A stretch of DNA of 64,000 nucleotides from Haplodiscus bocki (GCA_965655095.1 OZ296648.1:189906001-189970000); one strand, 5' to 3'. Positions 15,950 through 47,317 are shown, counted from the first letter of the stretch. Numbers and translations: made by a program. The notes: a model not told the origin generated them from the sequence alone.

Positions 15950-18383
15950 TATATACACTGGAACTTTTGAGAAAATTATCCTATCTCTGTTGCTAAGAAT
16001 GTTAGGTGGGAATTCTTTGAAAATTTTAGAGTCAAGAGTCAGTAGACAGCATAACAGGGACACCTTGTTTCATTTCCTCGAAATCAAAAGGTTCCTTGCA
16101 GGATGAGATTTTTTTGTTGGGTCTTGTTCGACCTATCTTTTTGAGTTATTAACGAAAGGAAACTAATTCAGTTGACAACTTCAGCACTTTCTACAATTTT
16201 ACTTCGAATTGCTATCCTTTGATATCAAGTTATGTAGCTCTGTTATCAAACACTAACAACGTTGGTTCAGTACTGGATCTGTTTGTGAATTAGGATAATT
16301 TCTTTTTTTTTGAACAGGAGCTATAATAGAACATGTCAAGTCAGTTATTTTAACGCTTACATCTGGGTATCAAATTCTAAATTGGAAATAACAATAATTG
16401 TCATCGAAGACAGATAATTAATTAGATTTACATAGAAACTCTGTGGGCAAGAAGATCAACATCAAAGCAGATACGAAAACAGCGGGTCAGGTTAAGATTT
16501 CTGAAGTGGTCACTTAGATTTTCTCATTCTCCATTGAGATCTAGTTGCAGTCCCATAACGTCTTAGACTTAACGAAGTTTCAGCTCTCGAACATTTCCAC
16601 AAGGCTCAATGTCTGCCTCAGTTCTACCTCGGCTCCCCCTAAACCAATTTTAGTACTTTTTTATACCTACACTTATGTTATCTGTATCGTTATCCTGTAT
16701 AAAATTATATTTGGTTGGGAGGTGACGAAAAAATGCCCTGTGAGAAGAATTCAAGAATTTTACGGGTTTACGGTTCCGAAGGAAAATAATAAAGTCCTGA
16801 TTCATAAATATTTAGAAGACAAAGTAGTGAACTTTAAAACGTGTAGAGAGAGCTATGAATTCCCAGTTGTTAGTATTCGGAGAACGTGGATCAGATAAAA
16901 TAAGTTTCTTTGAAGATTAATTTGAGCTACCTAATTTTTCAAACAACAGTGTGAGTGGACTATTGATTCAGTTTATGAAGCTTGTTTTTCTGGATGTACT
17001 CCGGGATATTCAGTTGGAAATTTTTGACGAATACACAGGAATGTACTGGATCATGCTGGTAACAAAGTTTTGAAGGGATGGGTAGACAGACACGATTTCA
17101 CAGAAGTTTCACAGAAGTCAGACACGAGGATATTCATTTGATGTATAATGCCCATGATGCAGAAGATATCCTGCTGAAAGCTAGAGAGAATACAAAAAAT
17201 AAGTATCGAGCTCTAGAAAATAGTGGTGAAATCTTCACTAAAACAATTGAGACATACTTTTTTCGTGATGTAGTATTTTCAAAACTAAGCATCTTTCACT
17301 ATAAACGACTCAATGAATGCGGGGTGGCTTTGTGACATCTTGCATGCAACATAATCTGGATGTATGAGCAGGATTCCTGTAAAAAGTATGACAAGAGCCG
17401 CCCCAGCAGCCTCGTTAGGTTCCCGAAAAGTATTTTCGCCCCACATAATTCTAAACTATGACTCGTTGGTTAAGAACGTCTCAGATATGGATGGATTAGA
17501 CATTTCTCCTGCAATCAGAACTTTGGAGGAGAATACATCTATAGGTTTCTAAAATTCTTACTCGAAAAAGAAAGTAACGAGAGTGTAGTCAAAAAATCAG
17601 ATCAAGATGCTTTTTATTTTGTCAACCGCTGCTTGTAAAAGGAATATTGATGACTAAGTTCCTTCACATAAATTTTCAAAGCAGAAAATATGGGTTGAAG
17701 GAAACTTTGTTGAATATGGCATGCGACATTTTTACGATGATAACTAAAATTACTGAGAGCAGATATTTCGGTTCAAATTACCGACAAAATTATATCAACC
17801 TTTTTTAGACTTTTCCAGTGTTTGAAAATCTCCGCCATCTCCTTGCTTTTGTCCATCGAGTTATCACTGAAATGTTTCTAATACAGTCTGATAGAGAGTG
17901 GATCCAAGAAAAAAGTCGTGAAGGTGCTCTTAAATGTATTTACAGAGTTGTGAAGATAAATAAATATCCAGAAAGATTGACCAGTAATGACGAAAACAAG
18001 TAAACAGATTGAAAAAGTGAACGAAAATAGAATTTCAATACAAAAAACTAAGTAGAATAGTAGTAAGAGAGACACATCTTTGTAGGGTAGAATATTGAGA
18101 TGAGTTTAAAAGAAAAGTGAGCAAAGTGATGAATTAAGATGGACGTATAATTAATATTTATTACGTAATGATAAAAATAAAAAGATGTGGTAGAGCCCCT
18201 CAGACTGTAGAGCGTCCACTGAAGTCTGTTATGAAACTCACATTTTACTCACCAGTTTCTTCAAACTTGACCGAAGAATATGTTGACCAGGGCGTCTTCC
18301 ACTGAACGGATCGTTAAATGAATAAGGGTTTATAGAAACCTCTGATTTTCAAGTTTTCATTACTTCAATGCCTCAAAGACAAA

Positions 18384-18900
18384 CCCGGGTTGACGTCTCA
18401 GAGACATTCAGCGCTGATCAGCTCTGATTCAGAATACTTTCAGGTCTGTTTCAGCGCTGTTCATTACCTGAAAATCTCTGAACAGCGCTGATTCAGCTCT
18501 GAACAGCGCTGAAAACGCAAATTTTCAGAGCTAAAAATCAGCGCTGAAACGGCGCTGATTTTCTCTGAAACAGAGCTGATTCAGAGCTGAACAGCGCTGA
18601 TTTTCTCTGAAACAGAGCTGATTTTCTCTGAAACAGCGCTGAAACACCAAATCTTCAGAGCAAAAAATCAGCGCTGAATCAGAGTTGTTTCAGCGCTGAT
18701 TTTCTCTGAAACAGAGCTGAACAGCGCTGATTTTCTCTGAAACAGCGCTGAAAAACCAAAATTTCGGAGCAAAAAAATCAGCTCTGAATCAGTGCTGTTT
18801 CAGCTCTGATTTTCCCTGAAACAGAGCTGATAACCACTGAAGCCTTCTGAAACAGCTCTTATCATTCCTGATTTTCCCCTGAGACAACGCTGAACATCCC
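18384..18900. repeat. Left TIR plus subterminal palindromic CAGCGCTG/CAGAGCTG repeats
   Basis: Many copies of (T/A)CAGCGCTGA and GAAACAGAGCTGA. Confidence 0.9.
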
Positions 18901-18934
18901 TGAAATCTGTCTTCCATTTCATGTCCTCACCGGA

Positions 18935-19575
18935 CTTTTGCAATTTTTCTCCAGGGAAACTTAGATATTACGCTTTCTGGATAATTATATCTTATTGCTT
19001 CTCGGCAAATACTAGATCTTTCATTTTTCGCGAAAATTCTGCAGGAAAGCTCAAGTCTTACGGTTTCTGGGAATTGCAATCTCATTATTTTTCCGCAAAA
19101 ACTAGATCTTATCCTCTTTTCGCAGATTTTCTCCAGGAAACCCCAGATCTTGAGATCTCTGGAAAATTAGATTTTAGTCTTTTTCCGCAAATTTCTGCAG
19201 GAAAGCTTAGATCTTACGCTTTCTGGAAATTTAGATAATATTCCGTTATGCCAAAATTAGATCTTTCTTTTTCCGCTAATTTTCTCCAGCAAACCTCTGA
19301 TCTTAAGCCCTCTGGAAATTTAGATTTGAGTCTTTTTTCGCAAATTTCTGCCGGAAATCTTACATTTTACGCTTTCTGGAAAATAGATCATTCATTTTTT
19401 TTGCAAATTTCTGCAGGTAACCTTCCATTTTATATGCTTTCAGGAAAATTATTGCCTATTCCTCGGCAAAACCTTGATCTCATTCATTTTTCGTGAGTTG
19501 CTGCAGGAAAGTTTAGATCTCACACTTTCTGGAATTTCAGATCTCATTCTTCTTCGGCAAAAACTAGATCTTTCT
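18935..19575. repeat. Second-tier subterminal array (CAAATTTCTGCAGGAAAG...TTAGATCT units), left
   Basis: Degenerate ~60/90-bp units rich in AGATCT. Confidence 0.85.
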
Positions 19576-19726
19576 AAAAACAGAAGAAAAAACATTTTTT
19601 ACAAAAAAAACGATAAAAAAGCATCATTATTAAAAATAGTCTTTTCTCAAGTCTTTCTGTCAAAAAAACTTCAGACACACTGACCGAAGGTGACCAAAGG
19701 CACTTCTCAAGTTCTGTAGGGGGAAT

Positions 19727-20187
19727 TCTTTGAGACTTGGAGGCTGTTTTCATGATGCATGTAGCATTGGGATACTTTTTGATTTCCTCCACGAACGTGT
19801 GATACTCAGTTGGAAGCTCAAACGTGGGGGGATAAAAGTCCTATTTGGCAGCTTCCAATTTGCCAAATTCTCTTTCGAGTTGCTTGCGGAAACGCTTGAA
19901 GTTTTTTACCATGAGGTTTTTGCGAGTAAGTTCGTAGTGGTTCCGATAATGACATATTCTGGCATGCTCGTCCATGTAACAGTCATCGAACACCTTTCTC
20001 ATCCACCCGACATCGCACCAATAGACATCCCAATCGGCGCCTTCTTCGGTGACGTGGGTCCCACTTTGAGTACATCCATGATGGTGTTAGTCAATCCACA
20101 TCTGAACCTGATATTGCGATCATAATTATTTCTCCTGTTGCTCCCTCGTCCACAGGGACCAATATTCGACACCTTGTTCTTGTTCAT
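19727..20187 (-). pseudogene. TTLL9: Captured intronless 5' fragment of tubulin polyglutamylase TTLL9
   Basis: Minus strand reads [17 protein letters not shown] [frameshift] [110 protein letters not shown]. This closely tracks the TTLL9 N-terminus ([34 protein letters not shown]). One frameshift, one stop, truncated. Confidence 0.9.
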
Positions 20188-20534
20188 GCTTCCTCTCAGC
20201 TCATATTTGGGGTCAACCAGGTTGAATTGAGATTTTAGTTCAATTTACAGCCTATTTATATTTATATAGAATTAATTATGATTCTGTAATACTTGGGGAG
20301 TTTTGACTAACTGTGAAATCGAGAACTAATTTTCACGACCAGATTCGGCACTTGTTATCTAATTATTAAGTTTATCACAACAATTAGGCTTTCGACAACC
20401 AGCGTATCCAAAACGTGACTCTGAACAAAAAACACGCATTGTTCCACGTAGAGAGATCTCAGGAAGTTCTCAAAACAACTTTTTTAGTTACAACCAAAGA
20501 AGAAAGCAGAGCAGAGCTCAAAAAGACATTTTCG

Positions 20535-22740
20535 GAACGTACTCAACGTCGTTTAGGAAAGTTTGTGTTTTGCTCAAAAAACAAAAGCTGTTTTTATAAG
20601 TATTCGATATCGCAAGACACCTCAAACGCAGGAGGTAAAGAGCCAAAGTATCAAACGTAGCCTTCGAAAGTTAGCGCAGGTAAAACCTTACACTGCAGTC
20701 GAACATAAATAGGTATTATTCCACGAAACGTTTGAAACTTACTCAACGTCGTCTTGGAAAGTTTGTGTTTTGCTCAAAAAACAGAAGTTGTTTTCATAAG
20801 TTTTCGATATCGCAAGGCACCTCAAACGCAGAAGGTAAAGAGCCAAAGTATCAAACGTAGCCTTCGAAAGTTAGCGCAGGTAAAACCATACACTGCAGTC
20901 GAACATAAATAGGTATTAATCCACGAAACGTTTGAAACTTACTCAACGTCGTCTTGGAAAGTGTGTGTTTTGCTCAAAAACAAAAGCTGTTTTTATATGT
21001 TTTCGATATAGCAAATTACCTCAAACTCAGGAGGTAAAGAGCCAAAGTACCAAACGTAGCCTTCGAAAGCTAGCGCAGGTAAAACCTTACACTGCAGTCG
21101 AACAAAAATAAGTAATATTCCAAGAAACGTTTGAAGCAAACTCAACGTCCTCCTGGAAAGTTTGTGTTATGGTAAAAAAACAAAAGCTGTTTTCAAAAGT
21201 ATTCGATATCGCAAGACACCTCAAACGCAGGAGGTAAAGAGCCAAAGAACAAAACGTAGCCTTCGAAAACTAGCGCAGGTAAAACCGTACACTGCAGTCA
21301 AACAAAAACAGGTATTATTCCACGAAATGTTTGAAACATACGCAACGTCGTCTTGGAAAGTTTGTGTTTTGCTCAAAAACAAGCTGCTTTTAGAAGTATT
21401 CGGTAGTGCAAGACATCTCAAACGCAGGAGGTAAAGAGCCAAAGTACCAAACGCAGCCTTCGAAAACTAGCGCAAGTAAAACCTTACACTACAGTCAAAC
21501 AAAAATAGGTATTATTCCACGAAACGTTTGAAACATACTCAACGTCGTCTTGGAAAGTTTGTGTTTTGCTCAAAAATCAAGCTGTTTTTATAAGTATTCG
21601 GTAGTGCAAGACATCTCAAACGCAGGAGGTAAAGAGCCAAAGTACCAAACGCAGCCTTCGAAAACTAGTGCAAGTAAAACCTTACATTGCAGTCGAACAA
21701 AAATCGGTTTTATTCCACGAATCGTTTTAAACATACTCAACATCGTCTTGGAAAGTTTGTGTTTTGCTCAAAAACCAAAAGCTGTTTTTATAAGTATTCG
21801 ATATCGTAAGACACCTCAAACGCAGGAGGTAAGGAGCCAAGGTACCAAACGTAGCCTTCGAAAAATAGCGCAGGTTAAACCTTACACTGCAGTCGAACAA
21901 AAATAGGTATTATTCCACGAATCGTTCGAAACATACTCAACGTCGTCTTGGAAGGTTTGTGTTCTGCTCAAAAAACAAAAGCTGTTTTTTTTAATTATTC
22001 GATATCGCAAGACACCTCAAACGCAGAAAGTAAAGAGCCAAAGTACCAAACGTAGCCTGCGAAAGCTAGCGCAGGTAAAACCTTACACTGCAGTCGAACA
22101 AAAATAGGTAATGTTCCATGAAACGTTTGAAGCAAACTCAACGTCGTCCTGGAAAGTTTGTGTTATGGTAAAAAAACAAAAGCTGTTTTCATAAGTATTC
22201 GATATCGCAAGACACCTCAAACGCAGGAGGTAAAGAGCCAAAGTACAAAACGTAGCCTTCGAAAACTAGCGCAGGTAAAACCGTACACTGCAGTCAAACA
22301 AAAATAGGTATTATTCCACGAAACGTTTGAAACATACGCAACGTCGTCTTGGAAAGTTTGTGTTTTGCTCAAAAACAAGCTGTTTTTATAAGTATTCGAT
22401 ATTGCAAGACATATCAAACGCAGGAGGTAAAGAGCCAAAGTACCAAACGTAGCCTTCGAAAACTAGCGCAGGTTAAACCTTACACTGCAGTCGAACACAA
22501 TTAGGTAATATTCCACGAAACGTTTGGAACATTCTCAACGTCGTCTTGGAATGTTTGTGTTGTGCTCAAAAAACCGAAGCTGTTTTTATAAGTATTCGAT
22601 ATCGCAAGACACCTCAAACGCAGGAGGTAAAGAGCCAAAGTACTAAACATAGCCTTCGAAAACTAGCGCAGGTTAAACCTTACACTGCAGTCGAACAAAA
22701 ATAGGTATTATTTCACGAAACGTTTGAAACGTACTCAACC
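20535..22740. repeat. ~200-bp tandem satellite, ~11 copies, inside the transposon
   Basis: Unit anchor ACTCAACGTCG at 20541, 20741, 20941 and onward to ~22733; high identity between units. Confidence 0.97.
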
Positions 22741-23299
22741 GAAATCTAGCTCAGTCTTCAAGAGTTGAATCAAAAACACTCGCACCGAGTACCAAGGGTG
22801 CTAAGACAAACGCAGCTTTCGAAAATGTTTTCTGTCCATGCCACAAACGCTGCAAAAAAAACGTCGACGTGGGAGCACTCTCGTTTCACTCAAAGCCCGA
22901 AAAAAGAGCTAGACCAGTAAGGACATCGTCAATTTACTCCTTCTACCCAAAGCTTTGAAAATGACTTGTCTAGTCCATGAAATGTCTCAATAGGCTTCGT
23001 TTTGTCGGTCTGAACAGAGAATTGAGAACAATGAATTCGTGAAAGACAAAACTGAATTAGGTCGACGAAGTTTCATATCGCAAACTTTTATTAAAACGTT
23101 AAAAATTCTCCGGGAAATATTAACGGCAGTTTCGCACCAAAACTTAGCAAGAACAAAAACATTTTTGCACCATAGAAACATTGATGATGAACTGAACATG
23201 TTAGTTTATTTGATCCTTCTATCAGGAGTATTTCGAATTTTTGCAACCTGACCAAAATCAATCAAGCACAAACTAGATATGTTGATTAATATTAGTTCC

Positions 23300-25632
23300 A
23301 AGTGAAGATAAGACATTGAAGCGATTTGAGCGCACATCAGCCTTCCATTTTGTCACCATAAGGGTTGACAACGCTAGATAATTGGCCTAAGAAGTTCATT
23401 TATGGTCAACAAAAGTTAGGACTTTGCCGAACCACGTTTCTGTACTGGTTTGAATGCAAAAAATTTTGACTATTTTCTGCATAGGTACGAGAGCTGTTTC
23501 GCACGTTTCAGAAGCAGCAAAATACAAACTCATTCACTCTTCCGGACCTTCGATATATTTGAAAGTTTTGAACAACCTGAGGAAAGCATACTTTTCCTCG
23601 CAGTCGAGTATACCAAGAAATTACAAAAAATTTGCCACAAATCCAATTTCCATTCTTTTCCACAAGGAGATTACCATTAAGGGCCTTGGTATTCCGACGG
23701 TAGCACGCTGAATCGGAGTACAGGCTTCCAATTCGAACTCTAGAATTTATATCAGCGTTTTTGTAAACGATTCGCGCCGCCTGAACAAACTCAGTTTCCA
23801 AAACATCTTGCTTGAAAGTGCGATTACCACTAACTTCAGCTGATTGTCCAGACCACGCCGTAACACTCTGGGAAATCGAATCATCTTCTATGTCTACCTC
23901 GAGAAGTGCTTGGTTTTCGAGGTAGCCTCGGCATATAACTTCGGTCTGACGCACTGTCCCCGTAAACAATTGTACAGGAAGTCGATTTGCAGATTCGAAA
24001 CACATTGCTGAAGACAAAAAAAACGGGGCCAAAATTTTTGACATAGTGACTCAAATGACGCAAACAGTGTAAATTTATTGTCTCACATTTCTCTGTTCCG
24101 AAAATAGCTACAGCCTCTCGGCAGAAACTATCTAAATGTATTTCAGCTACTAGTATGTCACTCTCAGTTGATGTTTCCAAAAGAAGCCTGACTCCAAACA
24201 CTAATTTCAAGTAATGGTGATATGTAGCTGCCGGAATGCGTCCTCGCAAAAGGATCACACCAACGTAAAAAAGGTAATTGACAAACTCTTTCGCTTTGAA
24301 ATCTTTCCGTTCTGCTACAGATCGCACGTTCCGCCCATGATCGATTAGTTCACAGGGAAGACTTAAACTAGCGGTTTCAGTAATGAAGGTCTCAGTTTCT
24401 TTTCTTTCCTCCATCAATTTTACATGCAGCTTGAGAAGGGCCTGGTAAACACCAATCAAGACGCAATGCATGTAATCAATACAAGCCGACAGCGGAAGAC
24501 CAGGCACCAATTCTGAGAAAGCACTTCGACCTTTCACACCAACGACATTGATTGAAGGTTGCCCGTTCGACTTCAGTTTTTCGGCCATATTCACGCATTG
24601 CCTATGGAAAACAGACTCGCGAACTTTGAAATCTTGGGAATAAGGGTTATAACAATGGTGTCCGTCAATAGTCGCACCCGGAGCAATGCAATAACAACAG
24701 CCGAAAAAACCGTTTTGTTGATACATTGAGAGACAATGTGACTTTGCAATCAAATCAAATATAATCATTATCACTCTCGATCGAATTGCGACCACATGGC
24801 CATTTTCATCTAGAAATCTATGTCGTTGCAATATTTCTTCGTGGATGTGAACCAAGAACTGCTCGAAGAATGGTTTTTTGCATCCAACGAACAAAGAAGC
24901 CAGCACGATATTTTTCCGAGACATTCACAAACGCTGCGGTAATTGAGCTATGCAAAACCAAATTGGCCAGAGACTTTTCTTTAATGAGGACTTGATGAAG
25001 GTGACTCCATCTGTGAAGAGCACAAGATCAATTGCAATTTCATCAAGTTCCTTAGAAAACGACAGTTTCTCTCGAGGAATATCATTCACATGGTTGTTTG
25101 CTCTACGCTCAGCATTGTAGTTTGTTATACTATTGAAGTTCCGTTTGACTACTGTTTGAATGAGATTTGAAATTTTCAAAAAACAGAATCTACAATTGGT
25201 TGTCTCAAATGCTGCTGCCGTGAGTTCAGCCAGCCTTTTCTTCGAAGAAGTTACCGCAGCAAAAGGGGACCGCAAATTGATACCAGGTGGGAGAAAACAA
25301 TGTAGCATTGTATAAAGTTCCTTCATTGCGACGTCGCTCAGTTTGAAACGGGAACAGAAACTTCTGACCATCAAAGAAGCGTTGCTCTGTCCAATAGAAG
25401 CGTTCGGATACAACAATTCTGACACCGGTTGACGCTCCCTATTGTCATCCGTAAAAGTAGCAGACTTTGATGGATAGCACTCAGGAAATGAAGATATTTC
25501 ATGTGAGTTGAACTCCATTTGGAGTGGTGCCTTCTTTCTGGGCGATGACGCCCAAACGTTATTTATAGTGCATGCAAAAGGAATGCTTTCGAAGTGCCCA
25601 GAATCAGTTTCTGAGTGACCACCAGGTGATTC
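23300..25632 (-). pseudogene. CACTA/EnSpm Tnp2-family transposase (disrupted)
   Basis: ORFs 24925..25518, 23881..24924 and 23508..24044 join across a TGA (probably CGA) and a frameshift at ~24020. Motifs LFTDG..KSS...SLWPI, FDLIAK, NGFFGCCYC, GVKG, IDYMH, KAKE, INLH.L.HL...V.NFGP and S.M.FES.N are typical of EnSpm transposases. 3' end approximate. Confidence 0.9.
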
Positions 25633-26307
25633 CTTTAAACAAAGAAATTGCTTCTCGAAATGTTCACAAAATAGTCAAAAGGACTCAAATTTCCAAAAAA
25701 TGCAAATCGCATCTTTTTTTCTCTCAAATGAAGCAGTCTGAAAACAAGACTTTTTCAAAAACAATTCAGAAGTCGCCACGTGCAAAAAAATTATGCCACC
25801 ACCTAAGAACCAATTTCTAACACAGAGACGAAGCTGGGCTTCTCAATACTTGCACCAGTGGAATATAAATGAACAAATCGAACACGTGAATTTGATTTTT
25901 TTAGAGACCACGCATGTTTCTGATTAAACTCACTTGAGTTGTAATTAAATATTTAGAAACAAGTGTAACAATTACGAACGGCTATAACCGTCACTTCCGT
26001 TGATAGTTTAGAGCAAGCGTTGATGCTGGTTAATAAAATACGGAACAGGGTTTCGCAGCTGCGCGAGAGCTCAAGAACAATTTTTTTCGACCCCTCGAGA
26101 GCACATGAAAAAATTGTCCGAAAAAAATTGAGTGAATAAACAGTATTCAGGCAATATCAGACTGTGAGTACATATGCGAGTTGTGAACGGCTCGGGGAAA
26201 AGCAAACGAAGGTTGCGATATAAAATTTGCTTGCGCAAATTCAATTAGTAGCGCAAAGCCATACAGACAAGCTCCTCACGTTCTCAATACCTACACTAGT
26301 CCAATCA

Positions 26308-27222
26308 TCAGAACTTTCCGTTTTTGTCGAGAAGTCCAGCGAAATTTGTTCCAGAAAAACATTCGACCTTAAGCAATTCCTGGGTTGAGTCAAGTGTCAG
26401 GTCATTTGGCGAGGGAAAACCAATTAACGCTACTGGCGCCGAAGCAGGATCTTGGATTGGTTCCAGCGGTATCAAAGCATCCAGAGTCATTGGGTTAAGC
26501 AGTCGCTGTTCATACTCCGGGATCTTAGCAACTTTAGACTTTCGCCTCGGAAAAGAAGAAAGTAAATGATTATTGCATTTCTGGATGACCTCCTTCGGAT
26601 TGCCTACGGACAATGAATCGACAGCAGAGGACGGTAACGGAAAATCGGCAGCTCTGCGTCGAGAATTGCATGTTGAGCAAAAACATTCGTTTACGTCAAA
26701 AAACTCGTCGCCGTACTTGACCAACAACTCATCTCCTTTTCCAATTTTGTTGATAGTTTCAATTTGAACAACTTTGTCCATCCTGTCAAAATTGTAACGA
26801 GAATTTGGCTCGCAATCCGAATTAAGAAAGCAAACAGATCCCAGCATCAAATGGGGACCTTTTTGATTCGATGTTAGATGTTCTGTAGACAGACTTGGAA
26901 CAGAATCCGGTACGGGAGCCAAGTAACCAAGAGGTCCATTCCTGAGGATGGTTCTCGGCTGTATCACAACTTCGCTAGTGTACGTCAATTCATAGCCACC
27001 AAACTTATCATGACGTATCTGGTAATCCTTCAACCTGGAATATGACTCTTTCACTGTTTCGTAACAATTTCTCAACTCTGGATTCATTCTCGTTTGGGTT
27101 TGTAAAATTCTGGAGGATTGCAAACGTACAACAGTTTGCGCTTCACCCCCTCCGTATTCGACGAGTTCTTTGACCAGTTGTCCATCACACTGGGCAAGGG
27201 TCATCCAACGGAAAAACGACAT
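26308..27222 (-). CDS. SET-domain protein, SUV4-20/Set9 (H4K20 methyltransferase)-like
   Basis: HLMLGSVCFLNSDCEPNS...INKIGKGDELLVKYGDEFFDVNECFCSTC parallels SUV4-20 LWLGPAAFINHDCRPN...RDIEPGEEISCYYGDGFFG..CECYTC. ATG (MSFFRW) at 27222; the frame is open from 27324. Confidence 0.8.
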   Translation of the reverse strand: MSFFRWMTLAQCDGQLVKELVEYGGGEAQTVVRLQSSRILQTQTRMNPELRNCYETVKESYSRLKDYQIRHDKFGGYELTYTSEVVIQPRTILRNGPLGYLAPVPDSVPSLSTEHLTSNQKGPHLMLGSVCFLNSDCEPNSRYNFDRMDKVVQIETINKIGKGDELLVKYGDEFFDVNECFCSTCNSRRRAADFPLPSSAVDSLSVGNPKEVIQKCNNHLLSSFPRRKSKVAKIPEYEQRLLNPMTLDALIPLEPIQDPASAPVALIGFPSPNDLTLDSTQELLKVECFSGTNFAGLLDKNGKF

Positions 27223-28810
27223 TGCACAAAAAACACGCAAGTTCTTCAGGAAAACAAGCAAAAGGGAGTGAGAACGATTACTTTTCGGAAAAAAAACTCG
27301 GGTAAGAAAATCGTTTTCACCCAAATAACCTGCATCATTTTACTCAGCAGTTACTGCGAAAAACAACTGAACATGAAGCCTTCTACAATTCAGACTTTTC
27401 TTTTTTTCACTTTTCCAATTTTTTGTCTCTAGTATACAGGTTTTCACTGGGTAAAACTGTCGGATATGCACAAGTTAATCAACATCTCGACGATTCATAT
27501 GCTCCCTCCTGTAGTCCCGTAGAAAAAGTTCCCATGAAAACCTTCAAAAATTCGTACGAAAACGCTCATGTGCACACTGGGCAAAGAACCAAAATGCCAA
27601 GGGCAAAGTCCCCGAGTAACTATGAAAGTATTTAGTACAGATGAAAACTTTTCAGAGTCCAAACAGAATTTTTTTGCATTGCTGCATCCGAAAACAAAAG
27701 AAGAAAAAAACAGCTCACTATATTAATATTTCAACTTGAGGCTAGAAAATGGTGGATTAAAAATTCAACAGTAACTGGTTATTCAGTGAAACCATCAAAA
27801 ACTTAATCACTAACGCAACCCAATACATTGTAGTTACCTATATCATTTCCACCACTTGTTTAAAAGAAGCATACCAGATTGAAATTGAAACAATGACCCA
27901 AAATTTCAAATAGTTACAGAAATCATGGACATTATGAAAAACTCCAGCCGAAAAGCGTATATAAAAAAACAAGTTTTAATCAGGACTTCAAAGACATGTC
28001 GCATCCGAGCGTCAATCCCACTTTGGATTCGCCTAGGATTTTTTTGTTCTCGCAGATCTTGACAAAAAACGCATAAATTGGTAAAGGCGAAAGTTCAACT
28101 TCTTGGGCAATCTTTTCTAAAAATAAATCAATGAAAAATAGACAGTTAGAGCGGATAACTATAGCACTAGACTAATGACGCGACACGTCTTGCAGCAATT
28201 ATCAAAGCAATATTATCAACATCAGTGGTTGTTCAAGCCAAATCATTGCAATGCATTAAGTTTCTCAAGCAGTAAAACGGTTGGATAGAAAGAAGAAATT
28301 GATCACGGTAGAAGAAAACTGATAAATATCATGTCACCATGAGGGTGGAGGTAGCACGAGGGAGTTAAGATTGAGTCTGACTCATGCCAAATGGAATACT
28401 CAGTCAGCTCGAAAAAATCATTAGAAAACGTCGAGGTTTAAATCAAGATTTTGAGGAGATTTTGCAACGAAGAGGTCTCAATCGTAACTAGAAGAGTTCC
28501 GTTAATCTTTGCAAATCACAAAAATCTTGACAAAGAAAACCAGAAAATGAATGCAAAACAGTTGACCTCGTTGCATTCAACTTCATCAAAAATGCAAGAA
28601 AAATAAACACCGACAAAACTGTAAGATAGCAGTGGACAATTGATGTGACACCTATTGAAGCAATTGTCAAAGCAGCATTGAAACTGTTTGCTCAAGCTAA
28701 ATCATTGTAAGGTTAAAAACTCAAACCTAGTCAAATGGGGTGGGGCGGAAAGAAAAAATTGAGCCTGGTAACAAGAGCTGATAAATCTTATCACCATGAG
28801 GGTGAAATTT

Positions 28811-30568
28811 TCACGCATCTACTACGATTGCGCCTGAATTCCTTTTGGAAGAGCTGAGTCGTTTCCTTTTGTTGGGTGGTTTCTCGAGTGGAACTTCCAC
28901 ACGTGGTTCACAGCTCGGCACTTCAAGTTGCGTAGTCTCATCGTGGACAGGCGTGGAAGCTTGCACATGCGCTGCAGTTTTATCTTTTGTATCAACAGAT
29001 TTACGTTTTGAGCTCCACTTATTTGCCATGTTTTTGAAGCTGGCTTTCGCTTCACTTGAGGCAGTGAGAGGCCGCGTGGGATACTTCTTCTTTTTGGCTT
29101 CTAAATAGAAGATGCTTTGAAGATTCAAACCCATAGACAGCAAAGGTGTCACAAAATTTCATGTAAACTCAATGTTTCGGAGAGTACGAATTAGCCGAAA
29201 ATACGAACCTTCCCAGACACTCTTTCGATCTTCCGGAAATTCTTCTCTATCTGTTTGTTTTGTTGGTGAAATCATGCAGCGTGGAAGCTGTTCCGAAGTG
29301 AAAATCAGCCTACCGATGTGACGCCCGTACTTACCGGCGCTTGTAGTGTTAAATTTCAACAAATTTTTGTCCGTCCCAGAGAACTTGCGGCCCGTAATCC
29401 TCCTGTGGATCAGTGTTAAACGGAATAAGGTTTTCTGCTTGTTTCACCTACAAACAAACAATGACTAGTGCGAATTCACCCCGGTTGGAGGACATACCGG
29501 AAAACAATCTTTTACTCGTATATGTACATAAAATAGACGATTATAAGATTGGTTCACAAAATGTAGCATAGAAGTCTCAAGCAGGAAACAATTTTGTGTA
29601 TGTGAACTTATGTTCATGCCTAGTTTTTGTTAAATTGGGTTGATTTTTTCCGGTACGAAGGCATTTAGTCTCCTGAGGAAATCTGTAGTTTTTAGTCGAC
29701 AAACAAAATCCCAGGTCGGTCACTAAACAGATCATAGAACGCTTGAAAGCAACTTACATCATCTTTCAAGGCTTTCGCTATTTTACAGGATTCATCGACG
29801 TTTCTTAAAGACAACTTTTTCATCGTCGCATTCAGAGAATTAAGGGACCCTTCGACTCTTTCCATTAGCCTTGTATTTCTATTAAAAGCTTGAGTCAGTT
29901 CCAGGTGCTGAAACTGAAAACAAAACTTTCATACGAGATCAAAATTTGAGAGTCAAAAGCAGAGAAAACTTACATTCTCCTGACATTCTGCAGGATTTTG
30001 GGTTTGTACGTAGTTCTCTACGTCTGCCGGAGTCAAACATTTTTTTCTTTGATTAGCAACTGGCGTGACTGACGGAAACTCTGTTGGAACGAAATCTGAT
30101 AAAACTTTCGCCAGGACAGCGTCATTGTCAACGATTTGCCCAACATCATCGAATTACAAGACCTAAGAATTATGTAAGTTCTATCGTCTTCAAAGTCAAA
30201 AATGCAGCCACCAACAGGATCACAAGTTTGGGAGAATTACTCTCCTGCACGGATAATAATTTTGCCTGCGATCCAAGCGGTATCGTACAGCAGGTAGGAT
30301 TTGAAAGAATCACTTCCTCGTGATCGAAATGAATGTTTTCCGTAAGGGTATTTGGATTATCCAAGTTAAATCTCAGGGTCGGCTCCGGGAAAGAAATATA
30401 TTTACCAGCGCACTCTTTTGACATCTCCAGAAGATAGGCATCTACAAAAACTTCCGGTCCTCTCGCGTACACTTTGCAGGTGAAAACCTGCCTGCCATTT
30501 TTCACTCTCACGGTGTTACCTACCTTCAAAAGAAAACAGAACCTAAACCACATAGCTTCCTGAGACAA
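28811..30568 (-). pseudogene. Spliced accessory gene: N-terminal domain, coiled coil and BEN-like C-terminal domain
   Basis: GT-AG introns, e.g. 29101-29208 joins SAGKYGRHIGRLIFTSEQL...KSVWE to EAKKKKYPTRPLTASSEAKASFKNMANKW. Coiled-coil exon ~29758-29913 (RLMERVEGSLNSLNATMKKL). Frameshift near 29365. Confidence 0.6.
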
Positions 30569-32358
30569 CTACAAACCTTCACTGGATGCGAGTCAAAGGA
30601 AGAGTTTCAGGATTAGCAATGTTATGATGTCGATCAAGGTATGAAGAATTGGGACGCAAACAATGCAAAGGATCGCGATTATTTACGTTGAGAAAATTGT
30701 AACTTGACAAATGTTGCTGTTACGCTGTCTTCATTATCTCCTAAAAACTAATTTATACAAAGAGCGAAACAAACCGTCAAGTCAGCTCTTTCTTGCAGGG
30801 TTGCGATGATACTATCTGATAGCAATGACTTAGAGAAGCTCCTTCCGTCGTCGAGACAGTACAGCAGCAAATGCACGGACTTCAAAGTCTCTCTGATGGA
30901 TTGATCTACGTCAGTGAATGTGCGATTGAGGTGCATTGGAGGCTTTACCGAGCGCCTCGAACTTGTGATTTGAGAATGCATTTGCGGAAACGAAAAAAAA
31001 GACAACTCGCAAAAAAACTGCTTCTGGTACATTTTTTTCATCGGTTTCATTTCACCAAATTCAGTAAAAAGCCTACTATTGTCATTTTATCATATAACAT
31101 CGAATTGTCTACTTTTTCCCGGGCACATCAAGTTAAAGCGTGCAATCACAGTTTGTAACTAGCACAGAGAAATACTGAAAAACGCCATAAGACCATTGCG
31201 ACACTTTTCGGTACTGTGAGACCAGGTAAACTCGGACGGAAATCACATCTAATGGATTATTTTTCGACACCATCATTTTTCGAAAACACCAGTAGAGTCC
31301 TGCTAACGAATTTTTTTTGGTATGGCGACTCTATGGTTCACTGAAACTTTTGCGCCAGAATGATGGTCAGCGACGAATTTGAGCTTTTTGTCGTTTTCCG
31401 TGGTAAAGTATACTACTACGAAAGAAAACAAATCCCTCTGACCGTAGAAATTCTCCGCAAAAGTGCCAAATCGGCGTGAACATCACTTTTCCAAAGGAAA
31501 GTCACACCTTTACTGTTCTTCGGAACTCGCAGAACGCTGTTTCGACAATCCCCACCGAAAATTCCCTTTTAAAGTCCAAAAAAAAATCAAAAATTCCCAG
31601 ATAGAAAATCTCCGTTTGAACACACGGAAATTCTCTTTGTGAACACCAGCTGGACAGCCGGAAATTAATGGCCTCATGTCGGAATGAAATTTTGAATTTT
31701 GACGAGATCGATTAAAATTTTCCTCTGGAAATCAGTTTCGAGGTTACCTGTTTTTGTCTAATAATGTAATATTTAAGCTCAGAGCTAGCCTCCTCGTATC
31801 GTACAACCACTGTTTTCTCTTAAATTTTCATATTTATTTTTGAGCCATTTCTGAAGCTCCATCGATGGAAAACATAGCACCACTATTGTTGTTCTCGTTT
31901 GACTTAAACTTAAAGATAAGTAGACTTTCGACATTAATCACAGAGCCCAAAAAACGGGATATTATTTCGACTACTGAGGTATATTCAAATTATCGATCGA
32001 GTTTGGCAATTGATTCAATTATTTTCCAAGTGAACAGGTAAGGTGAATATATTCAATAAAACATAGGTACCAAAAACGCATATCAACAGAACGAAAAAAA
32101 CAATTGCGGTAAATGGCATCCGCTATATACAGATGAAACATCATAACTCTCAAAATGAACAAAGGAAACTCAGCAAAGTTCAACATTAAGTACAAGCGAT
32201 CAGCATGAAGGTGATCCACGGAGTCTAATCAAGTTCAAATAAACCAGTCAATATTCCACTTCAAAATGAAGCACTTGAAATGAAAAACAACAATGAGCAT
32301 TGTTGATTCAAAACCAATCAGTTGTCAATTCGTTAGATGAGAACAGATGTCAGGAACT

Positions 32359-33161
32359 TCAATTCATTATCTCTTGCATAATTATTGTCTGCAGTTGGCG
32401 AAGTCCATTTTTCTTCAAACGTACCCCATCTTCGGAATCGATGATATTGGCACACGACAGCATCCTTCCAACGCCAACAAAACAGAACCCACAACTCCTC
32501 CGGTTGTGGTACAGAATTTCATTCAGTTCCCTAATGTCCAGATTGAAGTCGTTGAGCCTTCTGGTCACTCCCAGAACGAACACTTGCTTGCCTTGGTAAC
32601 GAAGCTCTTGGGACACACAGCAGATATCATGAAAAACCTAAACATTGGATTTTATTGGGTGAGCAAGTGTCTGGGCCCATAGATACACTCAGAAAAAGAC
32701 GTTCCGCAAACGAGAGCTTCATGAAGCTAGTACGCGTTTGACGATACTTTTGTTTCACCGGTAATTTTCCGAAGGAATTAGAAATAGCTTCAACTCGTAA
32801 GTTCAATTCAACGGTTCAAAATTCAGAAAATCCACTGTACGTTCAGAAATAAAAAGGTACATGAACATTTGGAACGATTTCACATTTCAATCATTAAGAA
32901 AAAAGTTATTATTTCTATAGGCGCCATTTGCGAGCGGACAGTTCCATTTTTTGCACGCCTCGCAAAACAATTGCCGCCTGCCAGTAGAAGAGCAGTAGAG
33001 CAGTTCAGATTGAGATAAATTATGGCACTTAGTACATCCATCAACCTCCTACCTGACACAGACAGTACATTGCATTGAGTGAAAATCATCTCTCCGAGAA
33101 AAGAATCACCAGCCAGAAAATATTCACTGGACTGCTGCTTCACAGTGCATTTGAAAGTCAA
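32359..33161 (-). pseudogene. Spliced SGNH/GDSL-hydrolase-fold (OSK-like) gene
   Basis: Block I LAGDS, block II SVSG and block III LLAGGN in 32913-33161. Block V DGVRL (DGVHL-like) in exon 32359-32637, acceptor TTTAG at 32638. The donor appears mutated (AT at 32912). Confidence 0.65.
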
Positions 33162-36059
33162 ACTTCCACTTTTGAGAACGAACTGAAAAAATGGTCAGTG
33201 GTAAACAATTTTGCGGTAATGGCAATGTCAGCGGAGTCAAAAACTGTGATTACTTTTCATCGTAAGATACTACTGACTGAAATCCTGAACCGGAGGCTTC
33301 TCTATTACACAGCGGGCGTTCAATGTTTTCCATCAGGGAAGCATTTTGCTGCTCTTTCTTCTGCTTTTTCAAATCAAGTTGTTGGCGAAGTGTCAGGGCA
33401 CCAGAAAACTGCAACATCACATTCACTTTGAAAAAATGCTTCCTCCAAGGCAAAATTTTATACAAAGGAAACCGAGAAAAAATTCCAGACCCTTGCACAT
33501 AATGCGTATCAAAACTGCCCATTTTTCAGACCTCAAAAACTAGTAAGAAATTGAAAACTATAATTACAGAAAACGACCATATCGGAAGTGTCGCTGAACA
33601 ACTGTATCTTCCTCCATCCGTCAATTTGTTCGCTGAAGCTGTTTTTGAAAACATTCTCGGTTCCGGAAACATTCAGTTAGATTAAAAAGACCAGAAAATT
33701 GCATCGCAAAAAATCCAGATAATTCACATACAAACTGGGCTACGCAAAAACTGCACCTAGAGGAAAACTGTTCACTTAATCCAGTTCTAAAAAGTTACCC
33801 ACCAGCGGGACTCCAACACCGAAGAAAGTAAGCAAACTCATTTTTTCCATCAAAATTCAGGCTTCAAAATATCTCGCGAAAGTTCCATTTTTGAATTGTG
33901 TCATGGAATTTGGTTCCGCAACTTCTTCAAGTTCTTCATATATGACGTATGAAACAGATTCGAATCAGGACATGAGAAATGATAAAAACGACATGCTTCC
34001 ACCTTCAGAATTTCTAGCAAACATGAGTTGGCAGCGCCCACACAAAAAAGAAACTTCAATCGTAATAAGACTGCGTTGGCCAGCTCAAACCTTCTTCACG
34101 TTTCAGACAAAGAAAGAAAACTGGTTTTGACTTCATCAAAGTGACTTGAAACGTTCATGACGCAAAAAATTGCGGCTTTAATTCGAACGGGATTTGTCGA
34201 AAAAAAGGAGGAGTACTCATTCGACTCACAGAGAGTCTTCGACATAGAATTATTCTGTGCTGCCTACGAATGCTTAACCTATCAACTTGCTAGACCTGTA
34301 AGATCTTTTCAAATGTCTACAACCGTAAGACCATCGCTTTACATATGGGATTAAAGGTCATCATTTGTTCGAAACGGAGGCTTGGTTAAGGCTTCTAAGA
34401 AAGATCATTTTTCAACGCTGTCATTTTTTTCAACAACCATTCGGAAGCGCTTGAAATCGAATTCAGGTTTCAATCGACTGCGATTGTACTTGGAGTAATT
34501 ACGGTATTCTACAGTTGTCCTTCTTTAGCCCAGTCATTTTACAGTCCAGTACATAAGAATAGCTCCCGTTTCAAGACAAACTTAACTTAGTTTTTCGAAC
34601 GTTATCAGAAGCTTAAGCAATACATGCCAATATTACATGCTACCGATCGACATCTTCTACTCCACATTGGTAAAAGAGCAAACCTTTAATCTTATGGTGA
34701 ACCCGGGTCGACCCGCCGGGTGGGAGTTGCTAATAACACACCTCTTCTACATGCAACTCGCTATTCCTGACACTACAGCCTCAGTATGCCATTTCTCAAC
34801 AAAATTCTTGTTCGTCGTTCAGCATCCTAAACCCGGCCTAGAAATTAATGGCTTCGTACCGAGAGTTGCCGGAAAGTTTTTGAGTTGGATACAATTATGC
34901 TCAAAATAAATCTCGCTAGTTGCATCATTACATGTTTTACATTAATGTCATGAACTCAGCTAATTGAAGGTTATTTCAAGCGCTTGTGGAGAAAATGTGA
35001 AACCATTCTCGGATGAATATAGAGTGGACTCCTGTTATGGCGCTACGATGGGGAGCAGAAAAAACAGACTTTGTAACCAGTATACGATGCTACAAGCAGA
35101 ACTAAAGCCAATAAGTTAAAACGTAGAGAATTTTTCGGCAATATTTTTCAACAAATTTTCGAAGGTGTGAAAATACCTGAGGAAATGTTGGTTCATTTCC
35201 GTTCTTTCTCCCCCAGCCCTAGAGACGAAATTCTTATTTTCCCTAAGATGATTCTGAGCTGCTCAGTATGGTTTAAATTTCTGTTCAACGTCAATGGAAT
35301 TATGTGTTTACTTCAATTAGCTTCAGTAAGCAATCAGTTTTTTGGAAGGTACTTTAGCTTCGTGATTTATGTGGAATGTCTACTGACTCGCAAAAGATCT
35401 AGTCAGTGAACAGACTCGTAGCAGTAACTAATTTTCGACTCGGGGGATTATCCACGGGGTCGGAAATAACGGAAAAGACCCGAAAAAACTCATTAATCCC
35501 GTTCAAATTCAATTGGCAATTTGTAGAATAAGGTTCCCCTGAGATAATATGCTTTCTCGATATTCAGATCTTACTTTCGGCAAAAATTAGACCTCCTTCA
35601 CTTAGAGCATTTTTTGGAAAATCTTTTGATCTAACGCTTTCTGGGATTTTCATTTAACCATGAAATAACAGTGCGCACTGAAGCCAGTATTCGTGAGGAA
35701 AAACATTATGGAGCCCGCGATCAAGCATGGGCAATCAGAAAAAAAGGCACCATTACACTGCAACTTGCAGAGCGTCCTTACAGTGTCAATAACGGTCCCA
35801 TATAATAAACGAAAAGCATCTAAAACATCAGCAAGTGGAGGTAAGATTTATAAATTAGGTCTTCGTATTGCATATTTAACTACATCGACTAGTTAGAAAA
35901 TGAATTGAAAATTATCAAGGAAGGCTCGTCCAGATTTGTTAATTGACAGATGGATGAGAAGTACAATAGTATATAAAAAAATTCAAAAAGAGAAGGAGAG
36001 AGGTTGAAGTTCATCGTCAAGTGGATAGCTAGTCCAGATGAAACACGACAGCCTTCCCT

Positions 36060-36760
36060 CAACTACAGCGCTTTCTAGGAAAAGACATCTTATTCCTTTT
36101 CCGCAAACTTCTGCAGGAAATCTCAGATCTTAAGCTTTCCTGGAAATTTAGAAATTATTCCGTCATGGCAAAATTAGATTTTGTTCTCTTTCCGCGGATT
36201 TTCTCCAGGAAACCCCAGATCTTAAGCTCTCTGGAAATTTAGATTTTAGTCCTCCGCAAATTTCTGCGGAAAAGCTTAGATCTTATCTTTCATGCAAATT
36301 TAGAAATTATTCCGTTATGGCAAAAACAGATATTATTCTGTTTCCACAGATTTTGTCCAGATAACCCCAGATATTAAGCTCTCCGGAAATTTAGATCCTA
36401 GTCTTTTTCCGCAAATTTCTGCGGGAAAGCTCAGATAGTACGCTTTCTGGAATTTTAGATAATATTCCGTTACGGCAAACTTAGATCTTATTCTTTTCCC
36501 GCAGATTTGATCCCGAAAACCGCAGATTTGATCCCGAAAACCGCAGATTTGATCCCGAAAACCGCAGATTCGATCCCGAAACCCCCAGATTTTAAGCTCT
36601 CTGGAAATTTAGATCTTGGTCTTTTTTTCCCAAATTTCTGTGGGAAAGCCCAGATCTCACGCTCCCTGGAAATTTAGATCTTATTCCGTTTTGACAAAAC
36701 TTGAACTGTTCTCAGGAGTTTTCTCCAGGAAACCTTAGATCTGACGCTTTTGGAGATAAT
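36060..36760. repeat. Second-tier AGATCT array, right (includes ~4x 21-bp CCGCAGATTTGATCCCGAAAA)
   Basis: Same unit and same orientation as 18935-19575. Confidence 0.85.
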
Positions 36761-37344
36761 CAGCCCTGTTCAGTGCTGTTTCAGAGTTGTTTTTCTCTGA
36801 AACAGAGTTGTTTCAGAGCTGTTCAGGGCTGTTTTCTTCTGATTCAGTGCTGTTCAGCGCTGGTCAAAATTCGTCACATTTTGGTCTGAAATAGTAAAAA
36901 AAACACTAATTAACACAACTTCTGCTTTTTTTTTCAGTCCACTTTTTACTCAAAACCCTACATTTCAGCCTTTTTAATATTCTACAGGTCACGTGCGACC
37001 AAAAAGCATGAGAAAAAGGCGGGTGCGCCAATTCGAATTTTTGGCTGAATTTTCGCCGGAATGATTTTTTTCATAGCTGGTACACTCCAAAAGAACATGT
37101 TTTTCGTGATCCCAATACTTTTTCGAACTTACACGAAGCATTTTCGTCGGTTTCTCAATTCGTTTTGATCCAGCGCTGAACAGCGCTGATTCAGAGAAAA
37201 CCAGTGGTGAACAGCTCTGAAACAGCGCTGATCAGCGCTGGTTTTCTTAACCCATTCTGAAACAGCGCTGATCAGCGCTGAAATTTATAAAATCTCTGAA
37301 ACAGCGCTGTTCAGCGCTGATTTGCTCTGGGACTTCAACCCGGG
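36760..37344. repeat. Right subterminal CAGCGCTG repeats and right TIR
   Basis: CAGCGCTG clusters at 36760-36862 and 37170-37344. Confidence 0.88.
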
Positions 37345-41639: not shown

Positions 41640-42120
41640 AATGGGAGATAAAACAAAAAAGATGTAAACTCCTGTGTTGCAGAAAGGAAAACACCCTCAT
41701 CCACAGAATTTAAATCAAAACAAACTGCTCTTCGCCATCCTAAATCTACTGTACACAACACAGATGAAAAGAAAAGATAACACTTTGAGTCTATCGCAAA
41801 AAAAGATGTTGTAAATACAGCCTATCGTGACGGAAATTTCAGAGGAAACGAACATATTTAAAAAAAAGATAAAAACCAGTTAACTGAAAACCGAAAACAA
41901 CCTGCTACTGGTGGTTAAAGTCATTTTAAGGAAAGCTAAAACGATTTCAAGGTGGGTCGTTCAGAGGGTTTTTTAAGCAGTCGACTAAGTTACAGTTTGA
42001 ACAATATAGTGAAATAGAAAAAGCTATCAGAGCAACAACACGGGTTCTCTATGGTGATAGGATTATTTGATAAATATGGAGATCTCAACGTATATTTTGA
42101 ATGACAGTTTAAGTTCAAGC
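41640..42120 (+). pseudogene. Relic Polinton hypothetical gene outside the left TIR
   Basis: VHNTDEKKR*HFESIAKKDVVNTAYRDG and KAIRATTRVLYG..LFD match VHDTYKKDEKISTNFEPVHNEDVINKAYLDEK and RAVKTTIQILYGEGIFD of the gene at 55390-55819. Confidence 0.55.
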
Positions 42121-42316
42121 AGTAGTTGAACAATTGACTGAAATAATGAATATCGTTTTTGGAGACTACTTGCGAAGAGTAAGTTACTTTTATTTACAAA
42201 AGAAAAACAACGACAGCTAAATTTCAGCAGTTATTAACTTCTTTTCTGAAACTCAGTCACTAAAGCCCAAAGTGTCTAACACGTGTGATACGAAAGTCTT
42301 AGCCGTGATAATTCTC

Positions 42317-42510
42317 AGTAGTGTACAAAACAGAATATGACGCCAAAAGCCGCGGACGCAACGGAGGGGGTACCTAATTTACACTCCCCCTTTACCACCT
42401 TTAAAATTTAAAAAAAGTATACTACATCAATGGGGTGCATAGGTATGAAAAATTGATTCTATAAAAATATTTTTTCCTTGATGTATCAAGGGGGGTACAC
42501 AGGAAAGAAA
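42317..42510 (+). repeat. Polinton left TIR
   Basis: Inverted match to ~61235-61428; first ~160 bp highly similar. Confidence 0.93.
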
Positions 42511-42639
42511 ATTTAATTTTTTTATTTTTGTTAAAGTGTTCGCTCCTTGTCTTCTGACATCATATTCTGTTTTATACACTACTATAGCGTGAAATTATAA
42601 GATTATGTTGAAAAAGAAATAAATTTGAAAATATGAAAC

Positions 42640-43109
42640 CACATACAATTTTTAATCCATTTCTGACATGCAAAACGAAAAGGATTATTTCTATCATTGC
42701 AAAAATTGTCTACATACTTTCGATTTTGTGCGTTTACTCAAAAAAATTGTCTATGACACATCGGTATTTGAGACTTTACATAAAAACTTATGTTTGTATA
42801 TCGTAAATGTGAGTGAAATTTTATTGTTAATTTGTTTATTTGATTAAACATAAACCCATTTTGTCTAGCAAGTGTTAATTTTTTATTTAATTCTTACAAA
42901 TTCATGCTTTCACCACTAATTGTCAAATTAAATATTTCATTACTACTAATATTTGTAAGTTTAATATCATAGATACATTCATATTTAAAATTCTGAAAAT
43001 AGCTATTATGACAATCTCTAAAACATTTATCTATTATAGAATCCATTTCAGTATTGATCGGCTCATCGAATTTATATTCTTTTACAACATGTATATCGTT
43101 CTCGTTCAC
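42640..43109 (-). pseudogene. Polinton hypothetical gene (family A)
   Basis: HVVKEYKFDEP...LTIKF...PMCHRQFF...FCNDRNNPFRFACQKW with in-frame stops; paralogous to the ORFs at 56790-58820. Confidence 0.6.
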
Positions 43110-43146
43110 TTATTTGGAACAAATTTATTGAAATAAAAAATCTTTT

Positions 43147-46850: not shown

Positions 46851-46918
46851 TTTGTGTCTATTTAAATAGGATTATTTTTTTGAAATAAAAACACTTCAAA
46901 CAAAAATATAAAAAATAA

Positions 46919-47170
46919 ATGAAGAGTAAAAATTGCACTCAATGTTTTATTGAAAAACACATCAACAGTTCTTACAAACGATATTCAGAATGCAAAAAGT
47001 GTATTAACAAAAGAGGTATAAAACGTTACTATGATAATAAAGATAAAATATCAATTCAACAAAAAAGATATTGTGAAAAAAAAGAGATAAACTATTACAG
47101 AAACAAAACGACAACAGAAATAAAAGAAACACAGACTTTAGAGAATGACATAGATCCTATGTTGAATTAA
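46919..47170 (+). CDS. Small CxxC-CxxC zinc-ribbon protein (probably frameshifted at the 3' end)
   Basis: CTQC...CKKC followed by a basic helix; TAAATG start. Confidence 0.55.
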   Translation: MKSKNCTQCFIEKHINSSYKRYSECKKCINKRGIKRYYDNKDKISIQQKRYCEKKEINYYRNKTTTEIKETQTLENDIDPMLN

Positions 47171-47317
47171 AAATTAAATTAAAAGCATTAGAAGAAAAAG
47201 TAAAGAAGGAATAAGTATAATCACACATATTAATATATGTATACACTATAAATACTCATATAATTGTATGTATACAATTATAATTACTCATAAACATGTA
47301 TGTGTACACAAATATAA

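Follow-up and report, generated by a model that had tools for sequence, protein, structure and literature searches.

Within a 64,000-nucleotide stretch of the Haplodiscus bocki genome (GCA_965655095.1 OZ296648.1:189906001-189970000; hereafter the window, with positions counted from its first letter), the segment 18384-37344 is very likely what remains of a large cut-and-paste transposon with several genes, a copy now dead, that belongs to the CACTA/Mirage/Chapaev (CMC) superfamily. Its coding part would comprise three co-oriented units, namely a transposase gene that begins with a SET domain and two further genes, here called A and B. An initial annotation, made by a model from the DNA letters alone, had described the same segment as a CACTA element carrying a set of separate chromatin- and nucleic-acid-binding genes. 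The transposase gene is read in the following parts:

23399..25518, minus strand, DDE transposase part (CMC superfamily, Mirage-like by its matches), broken by a stop and a frame change
25519..26310, minus strand, spacer rich in stops that separates SET from DDE, probably intron plus linker
26311..27222, minus strand, N-terminal part of the transposase gene, with the ATG at 27222, a SUV4-20/KMT5-like SET domain at ~26629-27207 and then the linker

Relatives were sought with a 347-residue open reading frame (ORF) of the window transposase (23884-24924, minus strand). The search found 54, many of which carry DUF1258 and Transposase_21, and the DNA around several of them was examined. Five colinear loci of the window's own family lie in the public assembly ERZ26859043; they are 84-93% identical and share a terminus, and their identity to the window copy is ~92% for L001/L006, 91% for L002, 86-88% for L003 and for L007, and 84-86% for L004. 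In that assembly, the ends and the order of the genes are common to at least six copies besides that of the window. A sister family, comprising L005, L008, L009 and L012, has ~65% DNA identity and is alignable only in the SET and transposase parts. Two more distant loci, L010 and L011, come from two other samples.

The window SET ORF (26311-27339) matches PF00856 with 26.9 bits against a Pfam cut-off of 22.4, in agreement with the SET domain of the initial annotation. Its best solved relatives in a phmmer search are KMT5B/SUV420H, with KMT5B at 6e-7, and a profile built from the element SET domains matches SUV420H1/H2 at ~1e-20, the next family being KMT2D at 6e-8. By these matches, the element SET domain is of the SUV4-20/KMT5 type. 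The same annotation had taken SET for a writer carried as separate cargo, a view that the relatives contradict. Specifically, each of the ten transposase-bearing loci besides the window has SET directly upstream of the transposase. A full-library search with the window SET ORF yielded long proteins with an N-terminal SET; of ten that were scanned, nine held SET (~residues 7-185) and DUF1258/Transposase_21 (~residues 425-680) in one protein. At L010, SET, linker and DDE core follow one another in a single frame of ~1,110 codons interrupted by two stops, and L011 contains an intact, intronless fusion ORF of 1,035 residues. Intact relatives measure ~900-1100 residues, SET being the N-terminal domain of the transposase, and their SET and DDE parts are 30-48% identical to those of the window. 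Because of the L010 frame, the nine fusion proteins and the intact L011 ORF, we identify SET as the N-terminal domain of the transposase, and not as separate cargo, the single protein being seen in the relatives. The reading frames of the SET and DDE parts were also considered as evidence of a once-continuous ORF and proved uninformative, as they differ between copies through insertions and deletions.

The cofactor-pocket motif N-H-x-C of the SET domain reads N-S-D-C in the window and in most members, and N-H-S-C in two distant members; the catalytic tyrosine is invariant across the element SET domains. Since the variant is shared by most members with the tyrosine unchanged, the replacement of histidine by serine is ancestral and maintained, and not a product of decay. 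Downstream of SET, the spacer is 0.8 kb long and stop-rich in the window's family, and ~0.3 kb long in the sister family, where it ends in a polypyrimidine-AG. The spacer at L005 measures 294 nt between candidate splice sites, keeps the frame and has a strong polypyrimidine-AG at its end. From these features we infer that the spacers of both families are introns, other lineages having one uninterrupted frame. In the DDE part of the window copy, an in-frame stop at 24925-24927 separates two ORFs that abut in one frame, and the frame changes near 24016-24032. A non-standard genetic code was rejected as the cause of the in-frame stops, because the stops replace different residues.

The boundaries of the element are defined by these features:

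18384..37344, genes read on the minus strand, whole element of 18,961 bp with unique matched termini
18382..18383, left target-site duplication, 2 bp, AA
37345..37346, right target-site duplication, 2 bp, AA
18384..18433, plus strand, left terminal inverted repeat, begins CCCGGGTTGACGTC, 42 of 50 positions equal to the right end
37295..37344, minus strand, right terminal inverted repeat, begins CCCGGGTTGAAGTC
18409..18856, left subterminal array, 11 exact copies of CAGCGCTG in tandem units of ~110-130 bp
36855..37319, right subterminal array, nine exact copies of CAGCGCTG
19098..19382, repeat of ~153 bp, related to the array at 36096-36592 by the other end
36096..36592, array with 152-bp and 21-bp periods by the right end

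The matched CCCGGG termini and the AA duplication of the initial annotation hold: the exact 10-mer CCCGGGTTGA has two sites only in the 64-kb window, at 18384 (plus strand) and 37335-37344 (minus strand), with AA on both sides. The same termini, CCCGGGTTGA (CCCGGG), bound the five other copies and the sister family. The inverted ends extend over ~50 bp and are imperfect, with a match at 42 of 50 positions when read inwards by eye. Among the differences between them, those at positions 11 and 15 recur in other copies, and the left and right ends are thus distinct and stable. The left terminus equivalent to window 18384 falls on exactly the same base in L001, L003, L004 and L007, its terminal 14 bp are retained in the sister family (L005, L009), and the right terminus is also found in L006. 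The second complete copy (L001/L006), 16,172 bp long by our own count, is flanked by TA at both ends. A 3-bp duplication fails in both complete copies (AAA versus AAG, and ATA versus TAG), and the target duplication is thus 2 bp. Duplications of this length are typical of Mirage.

Just inside both ends sit tandem units of 110-130 bp and ~152 bp. The 8-bp palindrome CAGCGCTG occurs at 20 exact sites in the 64-kb window against 0.25 expected, and all of them are subterminal in the element, 11 within 370 bp of the left end and nine within 490 bp of the right end. The element thus shows the combination by which CMC elements are recognised: a short target duplication of 2-4 bp, ends in inverted orientation and repeats in the subterminal regions.

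Homologues of the window transposase ORF carry PF06869 and PF02992, and the ORF itself has a C-x-x-C motif after the second aspartate. The window's own fragment reaches only 15.6 bits on the DUF1258/Transposase_21 profile test; P0058, an intact relative, reaches 51.2 bits with DUF1258, for which the cut-off is 33.1. DUF1258 marks the Mirage group and Transposase_21 marks CACTA (PMC3985635), and the DUF1258 score exceeds that of Transposase_21 in eight of nine fusion proteins. Judged by these profiles, the transposase belongs to the CMC superfamily and lies nearer to Mirage than to plant CACTA. A canonical CACTA/EnSpm element was rejected, the ends being CCCGGGTTGA and not CACTA/CACTG and the duplication 2 bp and not 3. 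The label CACTA given in the initial annotation is therefore valid only at the level of the superfamily, in view of the stronger match to DUF1258, the CCCGGG ends and the 2-bp duplication.

Upstream of the transposase gene lie the two further genes:

32359..33522, minus strand, gene A; its exon 32883-33194 carries the motifs GDS, SGG and GGN, and its exon 32362-32637 carries DGVH
28811..30981, minus strand, gene B, multi-exon, with a basic C-terminal tail
30751-30981, 30173-30568, 29956-30153, 29695-29928, 29162-29443 and 28814-29158, minus strand, conserved blocks of gene B

All recognisable coding in the element is on the minus strand, in the order that the initial annotation had given: gene A, gene B, SET, transposase, array and a tubulin-tyrosine-ligase-like (TTL) fragment. 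L008 and L012 both contain counterparts of eight blocks that precede SET on the minus strand, in the same order and orientation and with 31-50% protein identity, so that in these two sister-family loci the gene order is the same at the protein level, and the splice sites are conserved as well. Compared with L008, genes A and B have a proportion of synonymous differences (pS) of 0.82-0.85, which is saturated, and a proportion of nonsynonymous differences (pN) of 0.37; mismatch between families is ~0.36-0.42, 0.31-0.36 and 0.62-0.68 at codon positions 1, 2 and 3, all these figures coming from protein-guided alignments that are biased to conserved stretches. GT-AG splice sites are conserved between the families, and single copies, including that of the window, carry mutated versions. 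Specifically, both families share the donor after the first conserved exon of gene A (GAA/GTAATA versus GAG/GTAACT, exon/intron), the acceptor before its last exon, and the donor after each of two exons of gene B. Because silent sites are saturated and both the proteins and the GT-AG sites are conserved, we regard genes A and B as true genes of this clade of elements, accessory and, to judge from the substitution pattern, kept by selection in this clade only.

Within the window's family, the ratio of nonsynonymous to synonymous rates (dN/dS, omega) is 0.55-1.1, again from protein-guided alignments. All copies from ERZ26859043 are broken, with stops or frame changes in each, and none of the copies examined has an intact gene A or B. 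Omega values in this range together with the stops and frame changes in every copy indicate decay after insertion. Conservation of the cargo across copies extends to genes A, B and SET, though every copy is damaged, and does not extend to the TTL fragment, confined to the window and L001.

That the upstream genes are captured host fragments or old nested insertions, of Pack type and without function, taken up before the family amplified, is most improbable. Capture does describe the TTL fragment, which is decaying and interrupted by an in-frame stop; as for genes A and B, relatives beyond the family are not recognisable, and no unbroken copy was seen. However, silent sites are saturated between the families, yet 43-49% of aligned residues and the GT-AG sites are kept; GDS, GGN and DGVH stand in both family consensuses, and introns and flanks no longer align. 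A Pfam search of the remaining open frames on both strands of the window copy found no other mobile-element domain, and NCBIfam yielded nothing informative; because five copies are colinear, private insertions in the window other than the array expansion are unlikely. Independent nested insertions, or cargo private to this copy, had been named in the initial annotation as what would speak against a coherent element; what we find are colinear copies, with gene order and splice sites conserved in the sister family.

Gene A shows the SGNH blocks I (GDS), II (SGG), III (GGN) and V (DGVH) in order, as read from the alignments and from L012. In the window, its donor site is mutated and the histidine of block V is replaced by arginine. 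Its best Pfam-type signal is a weak match to the C-terminal end of DUF459 (best E 0.0084), a domain that we take to belong to the SGNH clan. Searched one by one, the exons of gene A matched no SGNH family or structure at threshold in Pfam, PDB-profile or homologue searches, and an AlphaFold model of exon a was unusable (pLDDT 45.6). The initial annotation had called this gene SGNH/OSK-like, of which the four ordered SGNH motif blocks stand and OSK does not: there is no Pfam OSK match, and the consensus keeps the catalytic motifs, whereas OSK loses them. At one codon of gene A, L012 (~9650) has TGA and L008 (~1720) has TAG, different stops that are most simply explained as independent G-to-A changes of an ancestral TGG.

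Gene B had been annotated as a BEN DNA reader, an identity that we drop. Pfam gave no BEN match up to E=10, with the exon taken from seven copies and exons searched singly. A PDB profile search, run on single exons although a BEN domain would extend over two of them, returned no BEN chain. A word-index search for homologues matched only other copies, with no relatives outside the family. The C-terminal tail of gene B is basic and resembles a nuclear-localisation signal.

Several points weigh against reading the segment as one multi-gene element with a SET-transposase. The other copies come from ERZ26859043, which may not be the genome of the window, and the dN/dS figures carry the alignment bias towards conserved stretches. 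In L010 and L011, neither gene A nor gene B turned up within 10 kb of the fusion gene. The SGNH call on gene A is weak, being made at the level of motifs and below every family threshold. With serine in place of the histidine of the S-adenosylmethionine pocket in most members, catalysis by the predicted SET domain is doubtful. We infer, and do not read directly, both the introns and the SET-DDE join in the window's family; here the SET ORF ends in a stop (26308-26310), and 0.8 kb further downstream, beyond the stop-rich spacer, the DDE part opens with an ATG of its own at 25518. This layout, together with the ~0.3 kb spacer of the sister family, would suit two adjacent separate genes in the window's family, fused though they are in relatives. 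We consider this arrangement rather doubtful, given the strong polypyrimidine-AG and the preserved frame of the 294-nt L005 spacer, the residues '...ASSP...' upstream of the ATG at 25518, which match linker residues of the sister family and of P0058, and the start-of-protein motifs, which were found only ahead of SET.

Two further features lie between the transposase and the left end of the element and differ between copies:

19577..20086, minus strand, TTL gene fragment with an in-frame stop at 19841-19843, a late capture
20536..22739, tandem array with a 200-bp unit, 11.1 copies, a copy-specific expansion

The TTL fragment matches two adjoining parts of the Pfam profile (6-41 and 42-78), both below the cut-off of 20.1 bits at 17.2 and 13.6, and its best solved relative is TTLL6 (E 0.0018). 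It is present in the window and L001 only; in L003, L004 and L007, similarity resumes just beyond it. From this distribution, it was captured late by one sub-lineage, and it would be a piece of a host gene. The 200-bp array counts 11 units in the window, ~1 in L001 and a few in other copies. It has expanded inside the window copy and, because of this difference in unit number, is not a conserved part of any module, contrary to the initial annotation. Large internal arrays recur in the distant relatives L010 and L011.

The initial annotation had joined a SET writer, a BEN-type reader and the internal arrays, each as separate cargo, into an anti-silencing or self-regulating module analogous to that of plant VANDAL elements. 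Such a module would be in keeping with the common orientation of the genes, with their conservation in two families and with the purifying selection on them, and transposons that carry epigenetic modifiers have been described, namely VANDAL and, with SET genes, HarbingerS and oomycete MuDR (PMC12730594). However, BEN gives no signal in Pfam, the PDB profile or homologues, SET is a transposase domain by its place in the relatives, the array size is peculiar to the window copy, and the fusion gene of L010 and L011 has neither gene A nor gene B beside it, so that we hold this explanation to be very unlikely. SUV4-20-type enzymes write a mark tied to repressed chromatin and DNA repair, and for this reason anti-silencing is not the obvious reading of the SET domain.

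For the multi-gene element with a SET-transposase, we propose a working scheme. The element would have three transcription units: a spliced gene A, a spliced gene B and a SET-linker-DDE transposase gene with a poorly conserved linker. The transposase would bind the CAGCGCTG arrays at both ends, by analogy with CACTA-type transposases, which bind subterminal repeats. The tethered SET domain might then act on donor-site or target-site nucleosomes, either through methylation of H4K20 or, in view of the N-S-D-C variant, perhaps by no more than gripping the H4 tail. Among the roles that such a domain may play, we rank first, as a tentative possibility, an aid to break repair or integration, as proposed for SETMAR (PMC2847698). 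Target choice by a non-catalytic histone binder comes second and seems somewhat unlikely; self-limiting silencing or anti-silencing comes third and is distinctly unlikely, and some other role takes up the remaining likelihood. A broader and, taken as a whole, fairly unlikely proposal is that the SET-transposase, an SGNH-type hydrolase and a nuclear gene B protein, the two co-evolving accessory genes having been added in one host lineage, would form a kit that rewrites or reads chromatin at the CAGCGCTG-marked ends and so steers excision repair, integration or silencing.

Among known systems, the element resembles Mirage, CACTA (EnSpm) and Chapaev in its DDE domain matching DUF1258 and Transposase_21, the C-x-x-C motif, the short duplication, the dense subterminal arrays and its large size. 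Unlike them, it has CCCGGGTTGA ends, a 2-bp in place of a 3-bp duplication, an N-terminal SET domain and two extra spliced genes. SETMAR/Metnase, the primate fusion of SET and Hsmar1 (PMC2847698), likewise has an N-terminal SET and a C-terminal DDE domain that recognises transposon ends. However, it is a single-copy host gene that arose when a mariner landed by a SET gene of the host, and it combines a SET domain unlike SUV4-20 with a transposase of the Tc1/mariner type; the fusion described here is native to a mobile family that has many copies and ends of its own, with intact versions in several assemblies. A domesticated fusion of the SETMAR kind was rejected for the window element, whose family comprises multiple decaying copies with ends and target duplications of their own. 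In the literature searched, we found no report of a SUV4-20-type SET domain on a CMC transposase.

HarbingerS and oomycete MuDR elements are DNA transposons that encode a SET protein resembling histone methyltransferases (Repbase Reports 2014, as cited in PMC12730594), and they belong to other transposase superfamilies, PIF/Harbinger and Mutator, respectively. VANDAL (MuDR) elements with the anti-silencing factor VANC (PMC5735166, cited in PMC12730594) carry, next to the transposase, an accessory gene with a presumed action on the chromatin of the element itself. The element shows no sequence relation to VANDAL, its enzyme type points to a repression- or repair-linked mark, and no homologue of a VANDAL-type anti-silencing factor was found. 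SGNH esterases that keep their catalytic motifs occur in ORF1 of CR1/L2-type long interspersed nuclear elements (LINEs; PMC3905857) and in extra ORFs of bdelloid long-terminal-repeat (LTR) elements (PMC5408684). These are retroelements, whereas gene A belongs to a DNA transposon, is spliced and falls below SGNH thresholds. As in Pack-MULE and Pack-CACTA elements, part of a host gene, here the TTL fragment, has been picked up and copied with the element; the likeness ends there, genes A, B and SET being conserved genes of the element as judged above.

SETMAR is the textbook SET-transposase fusion and is treated as a one-off domestication; here the layout is native to a mobile family and deeply conserved. 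The subtype of the element SET domain is tied to heterochromatin and to 53BP1-dependent break repair, which makes the family a natural system in which to ask why a cut-and-paste enzyme touches H4, and the conserved change of histidine to serine offers a ready test of catalysis versus binding only. The conserved, spliced genes A and B suggest that true multi-gene elements occur among DNA transposons outside plants as well, and that these are not just carriers of captured debris. For genome annotation, SET, SGNH-like and TTL open frames of this kind should be masked as transposon genes and not listed as host chromatin genes.

The individual copies have also undergone rearrangements of their own. 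Upstream of the SET start, at window 27375-27381, a 296-bp stretch present in L001, L003, L004 and L007 is missing from the window. It has stops in all frames and is thus non-coding, and in L002 no more than the final ~75 bp remain. An overlap of 7 bp between the alignments at the window junction suggests that the stretch was lost by a microhomology deletion. At L001:3868-7087, the equivalent of window 29776-32218, comprising most of gene B, has been lost and the region at 27.6-28.9 kb is locally duplicated. L007:13412-19008 holds a nested LINE with endonuclease and reverse-transcriptase ORFs, about where the window has its satellite and TTL region. Upstream of the sister-family copy at L009, ORFs with a weak integrase (rve) match lie at L009:2019-2378, probably as part of a retroelement by which genes A and B were replaced or displaced at this locus. 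L012:5242-5529 encodes, in the 5' region, a 95-residue ORF with a weak FLYWCH zinc-finger match that has no counterpart in the window. Internal satellites adjoin the fusion gene at L011:14445-20083 (340-bp period, 16.6 copies) and at L010:798-5022 (467-bp period, nine copies), L010 having several arrays. Outside the element, the window has a run of 200 N at 47-246, and its G+C content at 42000-60000 is 25-30%, against ~39% in the element.

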